Assembly: GCA_021613535.1 (NCBI GenBank)
Contig: CP075497.1
Coordinates: forward strand, 9,486,001-9,550,000
Reading direction: 5' to 3'
DNA from: Adineta vaga
Taxonomy: Eukaryota > Animalia > Rotifera
Length of the DNA: 64,000 nt
Position 1 is the stretch's first letter; the number at the start of each line of letters is the position of its first letter. The translations under genes and the position numbers were made by a program. Positions 20,891-49,900 of the stretch are shown here, one piece after another. The notes below the pieces were generated by a model. It was not told the origin of the DNA, searched no databases, and worked only from the letters and a program-made list of their open reading frames with translations.

Positions 20891-22932
20891 ATGCCGTTTA
20901 ATAAACGGACCGTCGAACCAATCTGTTTAAGTCAGGTACAAATAGCAAAAGATGTTCCAAATGAACTCGAATGTGTTGCTAATCATACTTGTGCAAATGT
21001 TATTCGACAATTAAGTTCATTAAGTGCTCATGCACAAGATCTTTTCGAAGAATTAATCAATGATGCTGGTCATATCTTTCAACGTACAGAAGCATTACAT
21101 GGTCGAATTGAAAGACTTAAACGTCAAGTAACACAACTCGATTCAAATGTTGAAGAAGGTTAGTCTTCTTTTTCCATGTAATTTATCATTTTTATTTCTA
21201 TCGATGTTTATCTTAGTAACGATACAAGATGTTAATAATCGAAAACCATTTGTAAGTGTTACTCGTATCGATCAACAAGTGGTTAATCGTGCAACAATGC
21301 CAAAATCATTACATTTACTCTATGAACAAGCTGAACCTGCACCAGCTCTTCATCTTCTCAATCCATATCGGTTTGTTTTCGAAAGAAATATATAGTTATT
21401 TGCATAGAAAATGTTCTTTTTTTAATTTAGTGATGATGGCCGTGATTCAATGAAATTTTATACTGATCCGTCATTCTTTTTTAATTTATGGATGCAATCT
21501 ATGATACAATTTCCACAGAATCATCATGCTCATCGATCTGGTAAACATGAACGTCATCGATCACCGGTAAGATTTAATCGAAAAAGACTGTTACTAGATA
21601 CATGAATATGTTTTCGTACTTTTTTTTTAGAAAGGACAGCAACATCAACAAGAGTCAATCTATGCAACCAATCCGACATCATCATCTCAAGCACGTCTCA
21701 TTCAACAAACATCGGAAGAACAACAATATCGAAGTCCTCAAGAATTGGTTCGTCATCGAAATGATTTTGATCAAACTAATCGTGGTACTATTCGTTCACA
21801 AATGCATCAACAACAAATCTATTCACCATCAAATCCTCGTCAACTTATGCAATATCCAAATAATAATCATTTAAATTATCATCCTGATTTAGTGCAATAT
21901 GGCAGTCCTACCTTATTCAATACATCATCAATGCGTGAACAACAACCTATGATGATGCATTTTAATACAAGCACACCAGAATCGATATCTCATGTACCCA
22001 ATGGATACAATGGCGAACAATCACCTCGATTCAATGTTCATTCACCTATGATTACACGACAAGCTCCAGTACCACCACCTCCACCACCTTTACTATCGTC
22101 ACAATTTGATTCAACAAATCATATGTCACATCATTCAATGATGAGACAGACAATTACTAGACCATCGACTAGTCCACCACCGCCGCCTCCTCCACCGCCA
22201 GTTCCACCACCAGCACCGCCTCCACCGGTATGCGTCTCTTTCTTCGTGTTAAAAGAATCTTTTCAATATCATTTATTTCATCTTTAGAATATCGGTATGG
22301 TAACATTAGCAACGATTTCTGAAATCGATAGTTTACCACCACCACCAGCCGATTTTATCGAACACTCACCTTCACCACCACCGCCACCACCACCTCCATT
22401 TCCACCTTCATCACATGCTCCACCTCCACCTGCGCCTCCTATGCCATCAAACATTCCACCAGCACCACCTCTACCAAATTCTGCAATTCAATCACTTGTT
22501 ATGCGACCGTCCGAAGAAGATACATCAGCCAAACTCAAAAATAATGTACATAATCATCATCATCAACATCATAATTCATCTTCACATAGAGATGATGTGT
22601 CGATGACATCAGAAACATCTATTCAAGATCAACGTCCTTATATTAGCCGTGATCTTCACTCTGATCTCTTAGATGAAATCAAAAAAGGTAATAAAATCAA
22701 TAGTTTTCGCATGATTATAAATATTTTGATTATCGATTTAGGTATCCAATTGAATAATCGTAAGAAAGAAGAAGAAAAGAAAGCAGCAGCAGCCGCAGTA
22801 ACAACTAAAACACCATCATTGAATGTCATGGCTATCATGGAACAAGCTGCAAAATATCGTCGTGATAAAATTCGTCCTCAATCCGAATCCGAAAATGACG
22901 ACGAATCATCACGTTGGGATGATAGTGAATAA
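20891..22932 (+). CDS. WASF: WAVE/SCAR actin nucleation-promoting factor
   Basis: WHD domain (MPFNKRTVEP..ELECVANHTCANVIRQLSSLSAHAQDLFEEL; KFYTDPSFFFNLW), polyproline tracts, WH2-like SDLLDEIKKGIQL, and an acidic C-terminus containing Trp. Confidence 0.95.
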
Positions 22933-23054
22933 ACTTAGATCTGACTTCCATTGTACTCATGTTTTCTTGTCTTTTTCTCAAATATTGTATATAATCTCTT
23001 GTTTTGTTCTTCAATATTTAATGTTGATCATGTTCAATCAGTTTTTGTTTCGAG

Positions 23055-24170
23055 ATGAATAATAATCAGTCTGATATATACGATGAATTAATGTCGAAAG
23101 ATTGGATTAACCAACAATATGAGAGTGACGATGGTCTTGTTCGATACGATCAACCGCCAAGCTATGAAACATTTATTCGAGAATGTTTTCTAAAAAATCG
23201 ACCAGCACTTTTCACTGCTAAATGTGGTCTTATGAATGATTGGTCATGTCTTACTGAATGGTTAAATGAAGATCGAACAAAACCTGATTTTGATCGTTTA
23301 ATACAACTCTATGGTTCGATGGTAGTACCTGTTACTCAATGTGCATCAAATAATACTGAATATGGTTCGGAGGAAAATAAATCTACGATGCATTTCGATG
23401 AATTCGTTCAGTTTTGGCGTGATAATCATACTACAGGACAATATTATTGTAAAGATTGGCATTTACAAAAAATGTCGGATGAAACTAAACCGTTATTTTA
23501 TTCGATTCCAATTTATTTTCAATCAGATTGGCTTAACGAAAAATGTTTAACTGAGAAAGAGGATGATTTTCGTTTTGTTTATATGGGTGGTGATGGAACG
23601 AATACACCATTACATATGGATGTACTTGGAACATATTCATGGTCAGCAAATATTTGTGGTCAAAAACGATGGCAATTTACAAAACCTTATTCCATCGAAT
23701 TTATTCAGGAACCTGGTGACATTCTATTTGTTCCATCAGAATGGTATCATAATGTTACTAATATTGGTCATACAATATCGATTAATCATAATTGGCTTAA
23801 TGCATTTAATATATTTCGTATATGGAAACATCTATGTCTAACACTCGATGATATTGAACATAGAATTGAAGATTGTCGTGTAATCATGAGTGAAACATGG
23901 CATGAACATTGTCAATTAATACTTCAAGCAAATGAAGGTATGAATTTTACTTCACTCTACAAACTTCTACATACAATTGCTCAAAGACGAATACAAGAAG
24001 ATCCTAAAACACAATCTACAAAATTTGATCTATGGATAATCGAACAATTGATACGAACAATGTTACAAAGTTCTCGATTTTTATCTGCATGCGATTTTGA
24101 TACATTTCCTCAAAGACCAAAAGCATTACTTAAACAAATTCATTCGTGTATTGAAAAACAAAAGCAATAA
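23055..24170 (+). CDS. JMJD4: JmjC 2-oxoglutarate oxygenase JMJD4; intronless
   Basis: YCKDWHL, YFQSDWLN, DDFRFVYMG, HxD (HMD), SWSANICGQKRW, FVPSEWYH, TISINHNW. Confidence 0.93.
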   Translation: MNNNQSDIYDELMSKDWINQQYESDDGLVRYDQPPSYETFIRECFLKNRPALFTAKCGLMNDWSCLTEWLNEDRTKPDFDRLIQLYGSMVVPVTQCASNNTEYGSEENKSTMHFDEFVQFWRDNHTTGQYYCKDWHLQKMSDETKPLFYSIPIYFQSDWLNEKCLTEKEDDFRFVYMGGDGTNTPLHMDVLGTYSWSANICGQKRWQFTKPYSIEFIQEPGDILFVPSEWYHNVTNIGHTISINHNWLNAFNIFRIWKHLCLTLDDIEHRIEDCRVIMSETWHEHCQLILQANEGMNFTSLYKLLHTIAQRRIQEDPKTQSTKFDLWIIEQLIRTMLQSSRFLSACDFDTFPQRPKALLKQIHSCIEKQKQ

Positions 24171-31628: not shown

Positions 31629-33282
31629 TTAATCTGTTGATATTAATTCTTGTGTGAGACATAAACGAGAAAATACTATTCCACCAGTGGGAATATTATC
31701 GGTTGATGTTATTTGCTCAATGTTTTGTCCCATAACTGCGGCATGAAAATGTTTATTTTCCTCGGTAGATGCTGGATGATGACGACGACGACGACGATCC
31801 GTATCGAGAAAAACTGTTAATTGAACAGATGTAGGCGTGGAAGGTAATGGTGATGTTGTTGATGAGTAATTTTCAATATGGAGTGAAGAAATTTCAATAT
31901 GAATAGTTGATATGGAATCTTTAATTCGAAATGAATATGCATAACTTGGAAAAACTAGATTTTCATCAACTTGAGATGAACCTTGAGAATTTTCATAGGC
32001 AACTTCAATTGATCCAGTTCGAGAAATGGTTATTGTCATTCCTAAAAGATCTTTTATATTGACAAAAACAATTCTTAAAATAAAGAAAATAATTGACCTG
32101 CTTTTGATATATGTTCAGTTTCAGCTAAATAACATAGAACAGCTTGTGATTGTGATGATGATGCATCGGAAAGAAAGTCAATTACTCCAGACCATGTACA
32201 AGCTTTTGTTGAATCAAATGTTTGTTTTGTGCGTAAGAATACATTTGATTTTAATAAAACAGCACTAAAATCTGATACTAAGACATTATCTTCTTGTCCA
32301 ACAATCGTATGCCAATCATCTTTCATTGAATGAGATATTTCTTCGTCATCTTCTTTTTCATTGTGTTTATAAAAATTCTCTTGAATTAATTTATCAAACG
32401 GTGCTGGTAAATCATAATAAATTAATGAACGATTAAAATATTTACGAAATTTTAATAAACGTTGCCAATTTTCAGTTGTATTTTCAACTTCATTAACTGG
32501 TGACCAAAATGTTAGACCTGATTTCGTCACTGTTGCAAGCCAATGAAGTTGCTCAAATGAATTTAATGCCAATGAAAAACGAATAGGAAATGTAATTTCA
32601 AAATTAAATAAAGAATAATTATCATCTTTTGTAATTGTTCGATACATATTGATAACACTTGACCATGTGTAAGAAGTTGTTGTTTTATCATAAATAGTTG
32701 TCCAACCAAGAGAAAATGAAACCATTAAGATTGGAATAACACGAAAAGCAAAAGTTAGATTTTGAGTTAGAAAACGTTGAGCATCTATGGGTTGAGTACA
32801 TTGAGAATTTGCACGAACAATATCGGCATTAAGAATAATTGGACCATTTATCTAAAATATTTAACTTTATTAAAGAAAGAAAGAATTGTATGCATTTAAC
32901 TGTATCTTTTTGTGCTTCAAGTTCATCAAGACATGGTTGTAATGCATTGATATCTTTGAAATCCAGTTTAAGACCTTTACTTGTTGTTTTCACGGCATGA
33001 AGAAATTCAGCAAACGTTAAATCACTTGTTGTATGTGGTGGATGAGCCATAATTGGACCGTTCGTTGATGAACCCATTAGAACATCCGCTTCAATAAATA
33101 GTGCAAAACCTATGAACAAGCAAACATTTTATTTAATGAATCATTCATAGTAAACTTACCTCTGAGTGTCTCGTTAATTTTTCCCGACTATTAACAGCAT
33201 GTGCCCATGTCACTCGTGATGCATCATTTTCCACACTTGGAAAATAATGTAATGTATGTTGAAAATGTCGTATATCACTCAT
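31629..33282 (-). CDS. FAM151: FAM151/menorin-family protein with a C-terminal extension; apparent 1-nt frameshift at about 33175
   Basis: VTWAHAVNS, FIEADV, PIMAHPP, KGLKLDFK, LNADI, SLGWTT, ITFPIR, LTFW, IYYDL. Confidence 0.85.
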
Positions 33283-33382
33283 TGCTATCGTATTAATCTA
33301 GAAATTGATAATAAATGTAAAGATTTCCTATTCATTATATACAAATATATTTAATCTAGAAATTTTAACAAAAAAAAAATTT

Positions 33383-34532
33383 TTATGTCGACATAGAATT
33401 TGTATTTGAATGATCCGTATTATCAACATAGGTACTTTGTACACATGAACGATAATATTCTTTACTTGATATTAATTCATGAAAAAGATTTTGTGTTGAA
33501 ATAATATCGGGAAGAATCTGTTCTGTATGCTAAAAAGATAAATTGATAAAACTAATCGTTTATTTTCATGAAAAAATCTATTTACGTCAGTCAGTGATTT
33601 CATATCTTCAAGTTTATGGCGAGCTTTTCTATGTAGAATACTTTCAATTTGCTCAATTCGTCTTTTCCATAGATCATTTTTGAGAACAGGACACCAAGCA
33701 CGATGTGATGCTATTGGATCGAATGTTAAATGTTGACGATTAATAGAAATTTCTCGACAACATTTTCCACAAATTAATAAAGAATCTTTTAATATCCAAC
33801 AGAAAACAAGCATCTTAAAAGCTGATAATAATCGTGGATCATTTAAATGTGTACTTGAAAGAAGATCAAAATCTGTTGCCTCAATTTGAAAGATCTAAAG
33901 AAAATCTCTATTATTTTTTCAGAAATATTCAATTTTCTAAAAACAAACGGTCGTCAATGGGCCAACAATATCAATTTTTTGAATCCGTAATATAATTTCT
34001 TCTGCTTCTTTTATAAACTTATTAATTGTTTCATTGGAATAAATATCAGTCAATTGAATAATCGATTCTGGAATGATCATAAATTTCCATACACAATAAC
34101 GATGATGAGATTCTACCAAAGATCGTGTGATATTTTCGACACATTTTGTATCTATAATTAAATCAAGAAAGATTCATAGAAAATATTTCTTTTAAGAGCA
34201 ATTTCTTACATTCATTGATCTTCAAAACACTTGGTAATTGAGCAAGAATTTGAGCATGACAATTCATACATTCAATCGAATCATTTGTTCGACATGCCCA
34301 TCCTCGTCGTGCACATTCAATAGCTGATATTTGATCAGATTTACCAAACCAAAGATAATCCTTATTTACAAAAAGAAAATAGAATTTTTTTTGTGCGAAA
34401 CTAATAGAACAATGAATAAACTACTTCATAAGTTTTCAAACGTTCACGATATTCATCCAATGTTTTATGATTAATTGTTTGTAATTCAGATAGATGAAGA
34501 AGATGTGATGAAAAGTTCGAATCTTTTAACAT
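33383..34532 (-). CDS. ZC3HC1: C3HC zinc-finger protein ZC3HC1/NIPA; multi-exon
   Basis: ERLKTY..WFGK..ECARRGW..ECMNC..HHRYCVW (first C3HC module) and CGKC..FDPIASHRAWCP (second, Rsm1-like module). Confidence 0.85.
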
Positions 34533-34760
34533 ATTATGTGAGTTCTTTTCTTTTTATCTATTAGAAAATAAAAAAAAGAATAAGACAAAGAAGAAGAAGA
34601 GATAGATCAATGTTTAAATATGATTTCTATCGATAAAAGAAAAATAAATTACGAATACAACATCAATGAATGCAAACATATTTCAAGACCGACTAGGAAA
34701 AAGAAAAGAATAAATCACATGATAATCAAGACAAATAACAAACGAAAAAAGAAAGAAGAA

Positions 34761-35511
34761 CTAAGCTTTGCGATATTCAAGTCGTTCAACGGTAAATTTT
34801 TCATTGATTAATTGATAAACATAAAGTGTAAGTGATGCTTGTTGAATGTCCATTAAAACGAATGAAGGTATAGTTGAACTAGAAGTATATTTTCAATGAT
34901 TATTATCGAAAAAAAGATTTAAACGAACCTATTCAATGCATTAAATGCTCCAGTTGCTGAACCTGGATTAATAAAAAATTTGTTATCACGTTCAAATGCT
35001 TCGAATTTATGTGTATGACCAGTTATAAGAATGTCAACATCCATTTGACGTTGTAACATACTTAAACTTTCAGTATCACCTAAATAACGATCGATATATT
35101 TATGTTTATATCATTCAATAATTACCCCATGGAACAATTTGATGACCATGACAAAGACCAATACGAAATTGACCAACAGTGACAACTTTTTGATCGACAA
35201 AATTTGGATTCTAAATCATAAATAAATAATAAAATATCAAACACTCATCCAGATTTACTAACATCATCAAAATCTCCACGAACGATATGAACATCAGCTG
35301 TTAAAGTTTTCAAATAATCAACTGTTTCTTTTGTACATAGATTACCAGTACATAGAATATGTTGAATACGACCAGGAGTTAATAATTTACGAAATTCATG
35401 TGGTAAACCACTCACACGATAAGGAATGTGAAGATCGCCCAAGACAAGAACAAGCTAAATCAATCAACTGTTAGAAATGAGCAAATAAGAAAGGTTTTGT
35501 TTACTGACCAT
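34761..35511 (-). CDS. VPS29: Retromer subunit VPS29; first coding exon is ATG only
   Basis: ATG|gtcagt, then [63 protein letters not shown]. Confidence 0.97.
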
Positions 35512-42431: not shown

Positions 42432-43712
42432 ATGTCGAGTAAAGTAAATCTACATCTTGAATTAAAAGAAATTGGTTATGAAATTGGAGCATTTGCTTCG
42501 AAAGAGACATTATCCAATGTTATGCGTCTTCATTTATCGGTAGGGAAATTTCTTTTTGATTATTGAAACTTTTAAATTATAATTTCTTAGGTTGAAGAAG
42601 ACAAAGGAATCAATGTAGCCAAATTAAGTGATCATGATCTTCGTAAAATCTTAGTTGAAAACGGTCTTTCAGTTGGACCAGTAACAAGTAATGAATCGTT
42701 TAATAGAAATAATTTGTCTTTGTATGAAAAAATGTCTCATTAATTTAGGTCATACTCGATCGATTTATCAACGAAAATTACTTGAAGTTTTAACAAATGA
42801 AACAACTGAAGGTAAAATCGAATATTTCTCACTTAAACAACCAACATATTTTACCTGTTTTTTAGGACAAGAAGATGTAACCGAAATAGAAGTACCTAGT
42901 TCAACAACACCACCACCATCATCATCATCATCATCACGTACAAATCGTAGTTCAATACTTCGGTAACTATTTCTCATTTCAGTATCAATCTTAATCTGTT
43001 TTTTTTCGAAAATATTTGCAACAGCGAAGACAATGGCATTTCTTCGTCTTCATCTGATCGATCGTATTTACATGAATTTCAAGAACCACGTATTCCATTG
43101 AATCGGGTCGAGATTGACGATAAAAATGTTCGTAATATATCATCATACTATCCAAATATTTCAACAACCAAATCGAAAAATGAAGAAATCATAACTAATT
43201 CTTATTCATCTCAACGTTCATCAACAAAATCAGAATCACGAAATAGTAATGTTACCTATGGTTTACGTGATCCATATGATTTTCAAAATGATGAACCAAT
43301 GATCATTCGTCATGAACATAAAGCAACACCGTTTCGGACAACAAACACATCTTCAACTGAAACATTTTCAAATAATACAAATCGCTTTTCAAAACCATCA
43401 GATATACAATCATTGGCACGAAATGATTTTAATGAAATTCGATCACGAATTTTTCCAAATACAAATGAACAAAAAGAGATAAAAATCAATCAAGATGTGA
43501 TAACAAAAAAGCCTACGTTTATCAATGATTCAGAACTAAAAAAACCCACAAATAATGAAAAACAAACTGTTGCAGTCAAAAGTAAATAAACAAAACATTT
43601 TATAATTTAACTTCTTTATTTATTTTAAGATAATGGAACATATCTTTACGGTGGTATTACAATCGGTGTTGCCTTAATTGTCTTTGTACTTTATCTCTTC
43701 TTTGAAAACTGA
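42432..43712 (+). CDS. LEM-domain inner nuclear membrane protein (LAP2beta/emerin-like) with C-terminal TM anchor
   Basis: Helix-extension-helix-like N-terminus, LEM domain (LSDHDLRKILVENGLSVGPVTSHTRSIYQRKL), Ser-rich middle, terminal TM YLYGGITIGVALIVFVLYLFF. Confidence 0.85.
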
Positions 43713-44172
43713 ACTGAAGTATTTTCTGTAATTGTCAGCATGAAAGAAAGAGTTGATAATTTTTTTATTCATCAATCTTTGTCTTGTTTATCAGAAACTT
43801 CTTTCTATATTTGTGTGATAATTTGAGATATGAAAATGAATGTTACGTGCTTGGTTATATGAATTGACATATCTCTTATTCCATATTAACTATCTCTATA
43901 TTTTCCTTCCTTCTTGTATTTCATAATGTCTATGTGGGTTATTATTTTTTTTTTGTATTTGAAGAATAAAATTGAAAAACATACACGCAAGGCATTTTTT
44001 ATGTCGGTTCATGTGAATAGTTTGTTGATACTGTTTATTGACAAAACATCAAGTTCCTGCGGTTGAATACATCATGAGAAAAGAAAAGCTAGACGTAAAT
44101 AAAATATCTGTACAGTATTTAACGTGAAAGAAGAAAGAGCAAAAATATTCGATGAAAAAAAGCAAATGAGAT

Positions 44173-44649
44173 TTATTGTGTATACTGAAAAAGTGTTTTA
44201 CCACTTCGTGTAACAATTCCATCATCAGGAATAGGTGGTGTGTGAAAATCATCATCAGCATCTTCTACTTCATCATCGGCACCTAAATAAACCAATATTT
44301 TGTTATACAATCATTTCATTTCATTTATCTTACCTTCACTACTTTCATTGGTAATAGCTTCAAGAAGTTTACGTTGATAGATTGCACGCGTATGACCTAT
44401 AACAGGACCAGCGGTGATATTACGTTCGTTTAAACCGCAACGAAGTTCATGATCATTCATTTTTGAAACATCAATTCCTTTTTCTAAAGCCTGAAAACAA
44501 ACAAGATATGTCTTGATATTCTATTAATTATGAAATTTTACTTTTGAATGGAGATGTAGTAAATTCATGAGAGTTTCTTTCGAAGTGAAAGGATTCAGAT
44601 CATAACCATATGTTTTCATGATTAACTGTAATTCGTGCTTAGTAGACAT
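44173..44649 (-). CDS. Short soluble LEM-domain protein, paralogue of 42432-43712; 3 exons; not in the ORF track
   Basis: MSTKHELQLIMKTYGYDLNPFTSKETLMNLLHLHSK|ALEKGIDVSKMNDHELRCGLNERNITAGPVIGHTRAIYQRKLLEAITNESSE-GADDEVEDADDDFHTPP..YTQ*; no TM segment. Confidence 0.85.
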
Positions 44650-44705
44650 TTGTGTGTTTATTTAAAAAAATAAAATCTGAAGAATAAAAGAAAAACAACA
44701 AATAA

Positions 44706-45152
44706 TTATGATTCCATTGTTTCATTTGGAAGATTTGAATCACCAAGAGGTGATAAATGTGTTCGTATTAGATCAATTAATTCATTACTCTGTGCTTCAG
44801 TCAAACGTGTTTCTGAATCTTCAATAATTAATTGTAATTCTACAGGTGTTGTTGGCCGTAAATTAAATATTTGAAGCATTTCTGTCTTTTTTAAATCAAA
44901 TTTTTTCATTTCATTATAAAATTGTTTGATTATCGTTGGATTTTGTTCTACACATGGCGTTTGTTCGAGATATTTCAATGTTTCATAAGTGACTGTATTC
45001 AAACCAAAATTACAATGTTCAAGTGTACGATTTTGTCCTTTTTTTCCACGTTTACCATTTTCACGTTCATTATTTGTCTCATGAAGTTGTTTAACAACAA
45101 GATAAGTTTCATAGTTTGATAATGGACGAAGTGAATCACGTTGAAAATCCAT
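44706..45152 (-). CDS. CRCP: RNA polymerase III subunit RPC9 (CGRP receptor component); intronless
   Basis: LSNYE, LNTVTYETLKYL..TPC, LKKTEMLQIFNLRPTTPVELQLIIEDSETRLTE (Rpb4/RPC9 family). Confidence 0.92.
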   Translation of the reverse strand: MDFQRDSLRPLSNYETYLVVKQLHETNNERENGKRGKKGQNRTLEHCNFGLNTVTYETLKYLEQTPCVEQNPTIIKQFYNEMKKFDLKKTEMLQIFNLRPTTPVELQLIIEDSETRLTEAQSNELIDLIRTHLSPLGDSNLPNETMES

Positions 45153-45322
45153 AAATTTTTCTGTTTAGTTTTAGTCGAAAGATAGATCTATAATAAACAT
45201 CAGCATGTGGTTTTTTCTCTATTTTTTGGAGAAAGGAAATCATGGGTGATGATCTAATATACAACCAAAAAAAGATCGGGGGATCACAAAAAGAAAACTG
45301 AAGAGTAGAAGGATTAAAATGT

Positions 45323-46160
45323 CTAATATTTATGCTCAGACCAACGATTGGATGTACGTGCTTTGAAACCACGATCGACATAATCAGTTGAATCAAGTGA
45401 TTTCCATGGGCCTACAGCCTATTAAAAATAACACGAATGATTAAGAGAGAAAACGTGAAAGAAATGATACTTACAGCAGCATTAGCGCCTTTATAACCAT
45501 ATACTTGAATTCCACCCCATTTTTCCCAATCCTAGAAAAACAAAATGTTAATAACATTCAGATTGAAATGAAATGAACATAACATACTTGTTTATGATAA
45601 AGCACCATGTATAACAAACTGCAAACACCCAAATGAATCACGAGTAGTTTAGGAACTGTTTGACGAAGCATCGATGCAGCAGTATTACCCTAAATAAATA
45701 AAAAGTTAACTTTCAATTCATCAGTAATTATACACAATATCAGGCAAGATCAGCAACTAACATTTAAAAGATTTTACTTAAACTTTCAATTGCTAGTCAA
45801 GGTTATTTGTTGTTAACTACAATTATTATTTAGGAATTCTTTTCTTAAAGGAATACGTACAACAACCGGACGTAATCGATTGAAAACACTATCCCAAAAC
45901 ACCATCCATCTATAGCGAACAGGGTTTTTATGAAGTTTATTCAAGTTTGGAACATTTTTCGGTTCATCCGTTGCCAACACTTGATCTTGAAGCCATTGTT
46001 TTCGCCATAAACGTTCTTCATTTGTCATACGAAATGGTAAACGTGAACGTTCATATTTAAATGGTTGAAGACTAAATTCACGTTCCCATATTGGAAATTT
46101 ATCTCGAATATCATGAGGATATAAATAACGTTGTTCTTCCCATGAAGAGTGACCCGTCAT
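45323..46160 (-). CDS. NDUFB6: NADH dehydrogenase 1 beta subcomplex subunit 6; 4 exons
   Basis: MTNEERLWRKQWLQDQVLATDEP..NP, a single TM segment, WENWGGIQV, DYVDRGFK. Confidence 0.85.
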
Positions 46161-46973
46161 AATGAAATTATCGACCGGACACTTTCAAAAAAGAAAAATA
46201 GTAATAGAAAATCTACAATATTAAATGGAAAGAACAATATATATATTATCGAATTGTAGTTCGTTAAATGATTGATGAATAACATCTCTAAATAAAACCA
46301 AAACAAGAAGGAAGATTGTTTATTTGTTAGAAAATTTCAAGCGCCACAATCACTGTCAATGTTTCATCGATAGAAGCAGAGAAAAATTTAATTAGAATGA
46401 AAATACCATGCTTAAATTAGATTGATTTTCATTTGTCTGTTGAAATATCTCAATTCGAACGAAACGAATTTGTTAATCAGACGTCTTTTTCGTGGACATC
46501 AACTTTCATTCGATTGGGTAATCTGTTATTTCTCTTCTGCTTCTTTACTACCCGTTAGTTTTACCATACCATGTGTTGAGGGTATGTGTTGTATGCTCAC
46601 ATCATTATTGGCGTCATCACAAAAACATACGAAACGGACGGACGGGAGAGTACAAAAATTAACTCGTCCGGTCGTCCTCATTCCAATATACGAGAGGGGA
46701 ACGACGAGAATATATATATATATTCTCTGTTGTTCGAGTAGGCGTCTTTAGTTATAGACATATCGGTATAAAAAGCTTTTGGACAGACACCTTATTAAAT
46801 TCATTTGATTATGTATAGATATATCTGTCTGTTGATTTTGATCAAAAGAGTTCTTTGTCTTTCTATTTCATTTAGATCATTGTATTAACATATAGATATC
46901 TTTTTGGTAAAAAACATATATATATATATATTCACATCCTTTGATAAAGTCTCATGTTGATCATCATTTGCTG

Positions 46974-49900
46974 ATGTCTACCACGCCACAAGGCTCTACA
47001 TTAAATCAAAACGAAACACCTTTAACTACAACAACGAATACAGTAACTGAACAAGACTACCTTATTACTGACGACAATACTGATTGTCGACGTAACGAGG
47101 CATTTGATTTGCCGAAAACGAAGAAGTTTAGACCATCAACAACGTTAATTAGTAACGGTAGTGAACCGATAATCATGTCAGCAAATGGTAATGGTACAAA
47201 TCCCGTTGAAAATATGGAACATACGAATGGAGGCATGAATTACAATGGGGTATGTTTTTCTCTCGATTGATTCATTTCATAGGGAAAAAAGTGATATGAA
47301 TCATATTCTATTACTAGAAAATTCTTGTATTTTGCGCTAAAAATAACTATTTGTCATAAAATATGGTTTATTTCCGAACAAATTTTTGTTTTAAATCTAC
47401 AACTCATGCTAGAAATTTACTTCTTCGTGTAAGTGTAGTATATTTTGCTTGTGAAGACTGATTTCACTCACATTGACTGACATCTGTTTTTGAGAAAAAA
47501 GAGAATGCTTTACTGTGTTGTTGTTATTATTGTTTTTTCTCTCCCCCCCTCCATTCTTCATCTTTCCATTCTTTACATAGCTTAGTATTAACAGGTGATA
47601 GAAAGAAAAAGAGAAAAGAGAACGACGAAAAAAAAAACCCGACAACGTCACTTCGCTTTTTTTTCTTCCTCGAACCACAAATACTGCCCTCTCTACTATA
47701 GTAAAGGAAAAAAGAAAATGTATATGTAAAGCTTTCATTTCACGGTCTTTCTTTCTTTCTTTATCTGACTCACTCGCAACATGCAAAGAATATTTGCCTA
47801 CATGTCCTCAGTTTTTTATTCCAACTTCATTTTCTACTTCTTTTTTTTTTTAAATAAAGGAGACGGAGTAGTTGATTGTGGTTGTAGCCGATAAAGATAA
47901 ATATTCATTTTTTTTTCATCCGTCTGGTGCAATGAAGAACTTATATATACATAAAATTGAAGAAAGAAAACTAGTTTTACTTCTAATATTTTATTTTTAC
48001 ATCGTTGAAGTTACATAAGATGAAAGAATATCTAGGTCATTATGTTCTTATTCGTTTAGAACAGTGAAAATACAAATTCACGATCAACCCAACAAACAAC
48101 AACCGCATCTAATCAAATGACGGACGGTTTACGACATCAAACGTCGACAACATCGTCGAAAACTCCTGAAATCGATGAAGGTCTTTATTCTAGACAATTG
48201 TATGTGATGGGCAAAGAAGCCATGCATCAATTGGCCAATGCTCATGTTCTTATATCAGGCATGCGTGGTCTTGGTGTTGAAATAGCTAAAAATATTATTC
48301 TTGGCGGTGCTAAAGCGGTCATCGTTCATGATTGTGATAAAGTTGATTACGCTGATCTTTCATCACAAGTAAAATAAATTTATACATGAAAATTTAGTCA
48401 TAAATTATTGATTTTTTTAGTATTATTTTTCCGAAGCCGATATTGGTCAAAATCGTGCTGATGTTGCAAATAAAAGCTTATCGGAATTGAATAGTTATGT
48501 TAATGTAACATGTTCATCTGCACCACTTGATGGATCTTTTCTCAACGAAAACAAAATCAATGTAAAAAAAAGCACAAACGACATTTCTATAATATACATC
48601 TTTTCATCTTAGGTTTTTGTTCTTACTGATGCTGATTTCTCGGAACAATTGAAAATGGGTGATTTCTGTCATAGTAATGGAATCAAATTCATCATTGCTA
48701 ATACAAAAGGTTTATTCGGGTAAGATTGAAATGAAAATTAATTTGAATCTTATTTTATTTATTAATAGACAAATTTTCTGTGATTTCGGTAAAAACTTTG
48801 AAGTTCTTGATACAAATGGTGAAAATCCTATAACACAAATCGTTACTGAAATAAGTCATGTATGTATAATTTAAACAAATATCTCAAAAAACGAATTTAT
48901 TTTCGCTATAGATAGAGATTCATACTGATAGGCTTGAGTATAAGATATCAATATCAAAACTAATTTTGAGTTTCTTTTTATCCTGTGTTCTGATGCATGA
49001 TGAAACTGATCATTCTTTTTCTGTTCGTCGGAAACAGACCATTATTTATGTTTATTGCCTGTAAAATTCGTTGCATAGCTATTTATGCATACAAGATGAA
49101 ATTTAAAAAATCTGTCTCATACTAGAGTAGACCAGATGTATATTCTATTAGTAATAGTCATACATCTTCATCTTCTCTATTGTGAAATACAATTATATTC
49201 TAAATATATTGTCGGTTCAGTTAGTTGTTTGTCACTTATTTTGCTAATGATATCATGTCACATTCTGTTTTGTTTGATTATTTAGGATGAATCAGGTGCT
49301 GTTTTCATGTCAACAGATACCCGACATGGGTTTGAAGATGGCTCATATGTTATGTTTCATGGTGTTAAAGGAATGACTGAAGTCAATGATCGAGAATTTA
49401 AAATCGCTGTACCAAGTGAGTCGTTTGAAAATGATTGATTTTAAAATAAAACGAAAATTGTTTTCTAGGTCCATTTACATTTACCATTGGCGATACAAGA
49501 AATTTTGGTGTTTATGAAAGTGGCGGAACAGTAACTGAAGTGAAAAAACCAGAAACTGTGAATTTTGTAAGAAACGCTTCTTGATTATTTTTTTATTGAT
49601 TAATTATTGTGTTTATTTTTGGTCTCCTCTAGAGATCATTTTCGGAATCTTTACAAGAGCCTGAAATGTTAATTTGTGATTTTTCCAAAATGTCAATGCC
49701 CGTTAATCTTCATTTAGCATTTCAAGTGTTATCTCGTTATCAAAAACAATACAAATCCTCACCAAAACCATGGGATAATGTATGTCGAATGATATAAAAT
49801 CTTCAATTTTTCTCAGAATTTTATCTTTCAATTTTATTTAGGCTGATTCCGATAAATTCTATGAATTAGTTGAACAATTAAATAAAGAGAATCGAGAACA

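Follow-up and report, generated by a model that had tools for sequence, protein, structure and literature searches.

How do three unrelated housekeeping genes manage to be expressed when they follow one another on the same strand with next to nothing in between? The question is raised by the genome of the bdelloid rotifer Adineta vaga, in a stretch of 64,000 nt that we refer to as the window (GC content ~30%; piece 6 of the 100.8-Mb, six-piece assembly). Here NDUFB6, CRCP and a small LEM-domain gene lie in that order on the minus strand, separated by coding gaps of 170 and 56 nt. An earlier note on this DNA had offered two answers: a polycistronic precursor resolved by spliced leader (SL) trans-splicing, or a leader exon shared between genes by cis-splicing. 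It also saw too little space for a promoter in the 56-nt gap, and we agree that promoters would not fit between these genes. The poly(A) site of NDUFB6 lies only 35 nt from the ATG of CRCP. On balance we lean toward the first answer, in the form of an SL-resolved operon of the tunicate (Ciona) type, and we set out below what was observed at each gene boundary, and which other arrangements compete with this one.

The genes

The gene coordinates, strand, gap lengths and spacer features reported in the earlier note all proved correct when rechecked. The genes are as follows (positions are those of the window):

45323..46160, minus strand: NDUFB6 coding region, 4 exons, 184 aa; PF09782 (exon 1, E 8e-7)
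46160-45861, 45689-45588, 45531-45475 and 45418-45323, minus strand: exons of NDUFB6; 3 introns removed in contigs of four runs
44706..45152, minus strand: CRCP (RPC9, a subunit of RNA polymerase III), 148 aa, without introns; PF03874 (Rpb4/RPC9), E 5e-25
44173..44649, minus strand: small LEM-domain gene (LEM), 3 exons, 124 aa; PF03020 (exon 2, E 6e-11)
44649-44542, 44490-44334 and 44282-44173, minus strand: exons of LEM; 2 introns removed in four runs
44055..44172, minus strand: 3'UTR of LEM; contigs end at 44091 (runs X1 and X2) or 44055 (X21)

Profile searches were run exon by exon. The exons were joined locally into proteins of 184 aa (NDUFB6) and 124 aa (LEM), each with a single, terminal stop, and these were compared by tblastn with the loci of relatives and with the window. 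NDUFB6 starts with the ATG at 46160 and stops with TAG at 45325-45323; its orthologues in relatives carry the annotation NDUF_B6. CRCP runs from the ATG at 45152 to a TAA at 44708-44706 and has 49 homologues, mostly bdelloid. A second, ohnologous copy of the cluster was sought for comparison, and the genome search returned a single copy of CRCP in the assembly. An exact-protein look-up of CRCP, intended to find transcript contigs, gave no record for the A. vaga genome.

The transcripts

Evidence from RNA comes from contigs assembled over 43900-46500 in four runs from four studies. All five GT..AG introns, three in NDUFB6 and two in LEM, are cut out exactly in contigs of all four runs, and the contigs therefore derive from spliced RNA. 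One intron-free contig of run X1, 1696 nt long, covers 44091-46171 and hence all three genes; the introns are uncovered in X1, which makes contaminating genomic DNA an unlikely source there. Neither the exact poly(A) site of LEM nor the 3' end of CRCP showed up in the contigs. Intron-free contigs bridge the NDUFB6-CRCP boundary, across 45188/45187, in X1 and X21, and the CRCP-LEM boundary, across 44677, in X1, X2 and X21, the latter uninterrupted and at full contig depth. A contig that spans two genes is not the same thing as a single molecule, however, and the bridge between CRCP and LEM could come from overlapping mature mRNAs.

The second answer, cis-splicing, fares badly against these contigs. 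It supposes that a single leader exon, whose donor would lie near 45272, is spliced to either 45161 or 44677, so that CRCP comes to be nested within an intron of the LEM 5'UTR. In its favor can be said that the NDUFB6 3'UTR contains GT dinucleotides, and nothing more. The candidate donor turns out to be a GGT at ~45265, a sequence that no spliced junction uses; in none of the four runs does a joint start within 45322-45187 or finish at 45161 or 44677; and the contigs are colinear through the supposed intron. Splice joints other than those of the five introns are, in fact, missing from the contigs of all four runs. We regard a shared leader exon as scarcely credible.

Run X6 (2013) differs in one detail. 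Its NDUFB6 contig stops at 45297, right after the conserved CTCTTCAG and ~25 nt beyond the stop codon, and 45107-45296 is without coverage. The contig stop could mark a proximal 3' end, or could simply reflect low depth.

The 5' end of NDUFB6

Pouchkina-Stantcheva and Tunnacliffe are said to have found, in 2005, that more than half of bdelloid mRNAs are trans-spliced, whether they belong to operons or not, and reportedly described trans-splicing of single bdelloid genes. The claim that SL trans-splicing occurs in bdelloids holds good for this genome, too. Two features lie ahead of the coding region:

46213..46214, minus strand: SL acceptor AG of NDUFB6, from an X2 contig with a loose SL end; mRNA body from 46212, 5'UTR 52 nt
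46313..46420, minus strand: conserved non-coding block upstream of the SL acceptor, from a three-species alignment (A. vaga, A. steineri, R. sordida)

The X2 contig carries nine extra letters, CTTGGTAAG, behind 46214. These are the reverse complement of CTTACCAAG, and CTTACCAAG plus the genomic AG makes up the 3'-terminal 11 nt of the rotifer SL, a 23-nt sequence that reads GGCTTATTACAACTTACCAAGAG (PMC3795323), and of the SL RNA genes of this genome. This match to the 3' end of the SL tells us that NDUFB6 is trans-spliced, and that the SL is joined to it at AG 46214-46213. The acceptor, TAG/A (a slash marks the junction, here and below), is kept in three species: A. vaga, A. steineri and R. 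sordida.

A search of the genome for the 3' end of the SL with a GT donor behind it gave 53 matches, compared with 0-2 in the control, and we take these to be SL RNA genes; no Rfam family matches them. Most occur as head-to-head pairs with donors 167 nt apart, clustered on pieces 2 and 5; L002:1335-1530 (C1:1639465-1639645) is an example. Two variants of the SL found within one divergent pair read ...TTATTACAACTTACCAAGAG and ...TTATTAAAACTTACCAAGAG (...TTACAAC... and ...TTAAAAC..., respectively).

The conserved block at 46313-46420 is probably the promoter of the cluster, shared with the divergent gene UBA1. No RNA contigs were found over 46249-46500 in any of the four runs.

The NDUFB6-CRCP boundary

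The 3' end of NDUFB6 is where the locus is most informative. Its features are these:

45187..45322, minus strand: 3'UTR of NDUFB6, ~135 nt; strongly conserved across Adineta and Rotaria in an alignment of eight lineages
45187..45192, minus strand: conserved TATAG/A; NDUFB6 cleavage and poly(A) site (after G45188 or A45187), and probable CRCP acceptor, AG 45189-45188
45161..45162, minus strand: AG proposed in the earlier note as the CRCP acceptor; not conserved, and at best a species-specific secondary site

The X2 contig that carries the SL end of NDUFB6 stops, at its other end, at 45187 and continues with 13 non-genomic A (T13 on the plus strand); NDUFB6 mRNA is thus polyadenylated after ...TTTATTATAG(A). 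It is so without the usual signal, for neither AATAAA nor ATTAAA occurs within the NDUFB6 3'UTR, whereas the convergent gene next door has its poly(A) site at 43983, 17 nt past an AATAAA that it uses. The upstream 3' end directly abuts a conserved AG. TATAG is present in all eight bdelloid lineages (as TGTAG in one, L017), 8-39 nt before the CRCP ATG, the poly(A) sites outside A. vaga being assigned by homology. In most lineages the 3'UTR ends with GATGATGTTTATTATAG/AT, precisely where NDUFB6 is polyadenylated in A. vaga, and beyond TATAG the sequences diverge.

Which AG, then, would receive the SL of CRCP? In five of the eight lineages TATAG, there 8-16 nt away, contains the only AG before the CRCP ATG, and this makes AG 45189-45188 the likely acceptor, rather than 45162-45161. 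The latter had been the choice of the earlier note, and we set it aside, for those same five lineages have no AG at all between TATAG and the ATG, and an X2 contig reaches 45171, 10 nt upstream of it. Splicing at AG 45189-45188 would also strip off the conserved upstream ATGs of the NDUFB6 3'UTR (in ATGCTGATG; GATGATG in most other lineages). CRCP probably has its SL acceptor here, as far as can be read from sequence comparison. The competing arrangement of 3' end and trans-splice site, which had been proposed for the 56-nt junction between CRCP and LEM, does exist, it appears, but at this boundary, where polyadenylation at TATAG (45188/45187) is observed and use of the AG as an acceptor is proposed; for the 56-nt junction itself it is a conjecture.

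Conservation of the NDUFB6 3'UTR is far above that of introns, in Adineta and in Rotaria alike. It includes an invariant GGTTGTATATTAGAT, within which lies UGUAUAUUA, a candidate 3'UTR site for PUF proteins of the Puf4/FBF kind. As a known or structured RNA the 3'UTR finds no backing: there is no Rfam match, and alifold gives -6.4 kcal/mol with zero covariation. Nor does TTTATTATAGAT behave as a genome-wide processing signal: it is matched 156 times, and its reversed control 224 times.

Conserved non-coding sequence just upstream of a gene might be a promoter, and here the main competitor of the operon enters. Perhaps these are overlapping, independent transcription units: CRCP, and perhaps LEM too, would have a promoter inside the gene upstream, and the SL would trim a short outron from each; or the cluster might be a 'hybrid' operon with internal promoters of its own. 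Spelled out for this locus, the CRCP promoter would reside in the conserved NDUFB6 3'UTR and that of LEM in the body of CRCP. In its conservation the ~135-nt 3'UTR equals the probable promoter block ahead of NDUFB6, and it contains a TATA-like TGTATATTAG; CRCP precursors that still carried their outrons would give bridging contigs just as an operon would; and more than half of bdelloid mRNAs are, it is said, trans-spliced regardless of operons. Against this, the TATA-like block sits ~70 nt before TATAG, and the invariant UGUAUAUUA would also fit a PUF-type 3'UTR element. Transcription could not start downstream of TATAG in those lineages in which only 8-16 nt separate it from the CRCP ATG, and TTATTATAG was rejected as a CRCP TATA box on the same count, with just 8-16 nt left before the ATG in four lineages. 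We consider independent units, or a hybrid, less likely than the operon yet its most serious competitor, and the NDUFB6 3'UTR could well hold a promoter for CRCP.

The CRCP-LEM boundary

The second boundary is shorter and differently built:

44650..44705, minus strand: CRCP-LEM spacer; pyrimidine tract 44700-44679, CAG/ATT (AG 44678-44677), AATAAA 44662-44657

The last 27 nt of this 56-nt spacer, ahead of the LEM ATG, are A/T-rich. Each of the eight lineages compared has a pyrimidine tract (75-90%) followed by YAG/ATT at a distance of 19-30 nt from the LEM ATG, and the YAG/ATT (AG 44678-44677 in A. vaga) may well serve as the SL acceptor of LEM. In R. sordida an insert of ~840 nt separates the CRCP stop from the pyrimidine tract, and the tract has stayed beside the LEM ATG. 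The AATAAA of the A. vaga spacer is not kept in other lineages. The earlier note had reasoned that CRCP must use this hexamer, and so be cleaved within the LEM coding sequence; the argument loses much of its force given that the hexamer is not conserved and that NDUFB6 is polyadenylated without any AATAAA.

The insert in R. sordida (L014:4470-5310) looks transposon-like, with ~12 TTCAGTA repeats on its left and ~10 TACTGAA on its right; a fragment of a short, basic ORF sits in the middle.

Synonymous divergence along CRCP is flat, about 0.20, and so no conserved element is embedded there ahead of LEM. This lack of constraint at synonymous sites speaks against an internal LEM promoter. Another possibility to be weighed is that of a stable bicistronic CRCP-LEM mRNA (or a tricistronic one), with LEM translated by reinitiation or internal entry, and trans-splicing playing no part. 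Contigs that run from CRCP into LEM uninterrupted, in three studies and at full depth, are just what such an mRNA would yield, except that contigs are no proof of single molecules. Reinitiation after a long ORF, here one of 148 codons, is inefficient in eukaryotes, and the conserved pyrimidine tract and YAG/ATT would be left without a role. A bicistronic mRNA strikes us as quite improbable, if less far-fetched than the shared leader exon.

If the SL is joined to CRCP and LEM as the operon reading proposes, SL-bearing ends might be looked for at the acceptors themselves. None occur at 45188, 45161 or 44677 in contigs of the four runs, and contigs lose short ends of this kind. Patterns for the junctions of the SL tail with LEM and with CRCP gave 0 matches each among JGI metagenome contigs, a result that is uninformative for the same reason. 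Missing internal SL ends weigh little, in other words: assembly tends to discard short variant ends, and any brief SL branch next to the read-through path would probably have been pruned. Eleven further look-ups of homologues returned genomic and metagenomic DNA contigs, with introns, which inform on synteny and carry no SL ends.

Gene order in relatives

The earlier note had recommended that gene order be compared between genomes. NDUFB6, CRCP and LEM are indeed kept together among bdelloid relatives: order, strand, tight spacing and YAG/ATT recur in Adineta steineri, in Rotaria sordida and in six metagenomic bdelloid contigs, a recurrence that goes beyond chance. In A. steineri the three genes occupy one strand with gaps of 164 and 47 nt; in R. 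sordida they do likewise, with gaps of 142 and 928 nt. Didymodactylos carnosus keeps NDUFB6 and CRCP in order, about 280 nt apart, and has no LEM gene at this locus; Vma12 follows CRCP, instead. The flanks are conserved as well, UBA1 upstream (and divergent) and Vma12 downstream, and because the wider neighborhood is conserved in this way, synteny alone is not specific to an operon. One candidate relative, L023, was discarded as a different organism (48% identity, 44% GC, no NDUFB6 neighbor).

In two Adineta-like metagenomic contigs (L019:1636-1744 and L020:1590-1684) a 5S rRNA gene (RF00001, 98 and 82 bits) lies ~300-450 nt downstream of LEM; no 5S rRNA match occurs at 43500-47000 of the A. 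vaga window.

The small LEM gene faces a second LEM-domain gene, convergent with it, at 42432-43983 (plus strand), whose mRNA ends at 43983. The first two exons of the convergent gene are paralogous to residues 1-89 of the small LEM protein (39% and 74% identity). The tail-to-tail LEM pair is found in A. steineri, too, where the partner measures 328 aa, and both LEM genes are missing from the syntenic site in Didymodactylos. Such a pattern suggests that the small LEM gene arose as a partial, inverted duplicate of its convergent neighbor.

A proposed spliced leader operon

We can now assemble the operon that we think the better account of this cluster. Transcription would begin at one promoter upstream of 46214 and read on to the end of LEM. 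SL addition at 46213 gives NDUFB6 its 5' end, and NDUFB6 is cleaved and polyadenylated at TATAG (45188/45187) without an AAUAAA. The AG of this same TATAG would also be the SL acceptor of CRCP, so that the upstream AUGs are removed and a 35-nt leader remains, and the pyrimidine tract and CAG at 44677 would provide the acceptor of LEM. At each boundary, the precursor would be either polyadenylated, to yield the upstream mRNA, or trans-spliced, to yield the downstream one; poly(A) site and acceptor coincide at the first of these, and one precursor therefore probably gives one mRNA or the other there, and not both. Some of the elements expected of an operon can be found here: genes on one strand with gaps (170 and 56 nt) that fall within the customary limit of about 100-250 nt, and an organism with SL trans-splicing and SL RNA genes.

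Why of the tunicate type? Operons without intercistronic DNA have been described in Ciona intestinalis, where '...AG + poly(A)' is found at the downstream acceptor, and no AATAAA (Satou et al. 2006, PMC1488885). The NDUFB6 3' end has this very geometry: poly(A) is added behind an AG, an AATAAA is missing from the nearest 40 nt, and the cistrons leave no DNA between them. It is for this reason that we read the cluster as an operon of the Ciona kind. In both, unrelated genes on one strand are involved, and the poly(A) of the upstream mRNA follows an AG that is the downstream acceptor, or in the rotifer the probable one; the same SL serves first genes and, as we propose for the rotifer, downstream genes; and mutually exclusive processing of the boundary is implied. 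There are differences. Ciona belongs to another phylum and its SL is unrelated, and in the rotifer locus the SL of the downstream genes, like unresolved transcripts that span them as single molecules, is a proposal. The CRCP-LEM boundary may differ, too, for the A. vaga AATAAA lies downstream of the acceptor.

Other SL operons are less close. In the SL1-type operons of C. elegans, with which Satou et al. compare those of Ciona (PMC1488885, its references 42 and 43), the upstream poly(A) site abuts the downstream trans-splice site and the general SL is used, as we propose here, but in the characterized cases the upstream gene has a canonical AAUAAA, and NDUFB6 has none. Nematode SL2-type operons employ a specialized SL and spacers of ~100 nt with a U-rich element; the rotifer locus gives no sign of this type and leaves no space between poly(A) site and conserved AG. 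The operons of the chaetognath Paraspadella gotoi, defined as same-strand genes less than 250 nt apart with evidence of SL, consist mostly of housekeeping genes and have no operon-specific SL (PMC12460157), and in these respects they are similar. Trans-splicing is taken there to have arisen independently in different lineages, and rotifers receive only a brief mention as one of the groups that have trans-splicing and operonic transcription. With bdelloid SL trans-splicing itself the locus shares the SL, the same 23-nt one (PMC3795323), with its 3' end on NDUFB6 and in the 53 matches to SL RNA genes.

As of 2021, operons and polycistronic mRNAs were unreported in rotifers (PMC7986045), and our search of the later literature found no report of them. 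The kind of operon is thus already known; its presence in rotifers would be new. If we are right, a rotifer operon with a boundary of the Ciona or SL1 type adds a phylum to the list of those with operons, and bears on whether operons follow almost automatically from SL trans-splicing wherever genomes are compact. It bears, too, on how 3'-end formation and trans-splicing are coupled at one common site, and for this the locus offers a short, conserved boundary, since in eight lineages a TATAG precedes the next ATG by 8-39 nt.

A wider reading can be put forward tentatively, at slightly less than even odds. Bdelloids might have tunicate-type SL operons without intercistronic DNA, and at this locus the NDUFB6 poly(A) site would double as the acceptor AG of CRCP. 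LEM, for its part, might have begun as a partial copy of the convergent LEM gene, lacking a promoter, that came to lie 43-56 nt behind CRCP once the lineage had parted from Didymodactylos, whose NDUFB6 and CRCP are followed directly by Vma12. The operon would then have gained a member in the course of bdelloid evolution and, if all this is true, would give a dated example of how operons grow by gene capture.

Two other tight junctions between genes on the same strand, spotted on first inspection of the DNA, occur elsewhere in the window, at 22921-23060 (plus strand) and 31629-35511 (minus strand). At 22930 a stop codon overlaps an AATAAA and is followed by CTTAG/ATCT; TCGAG abuts the next ATG.
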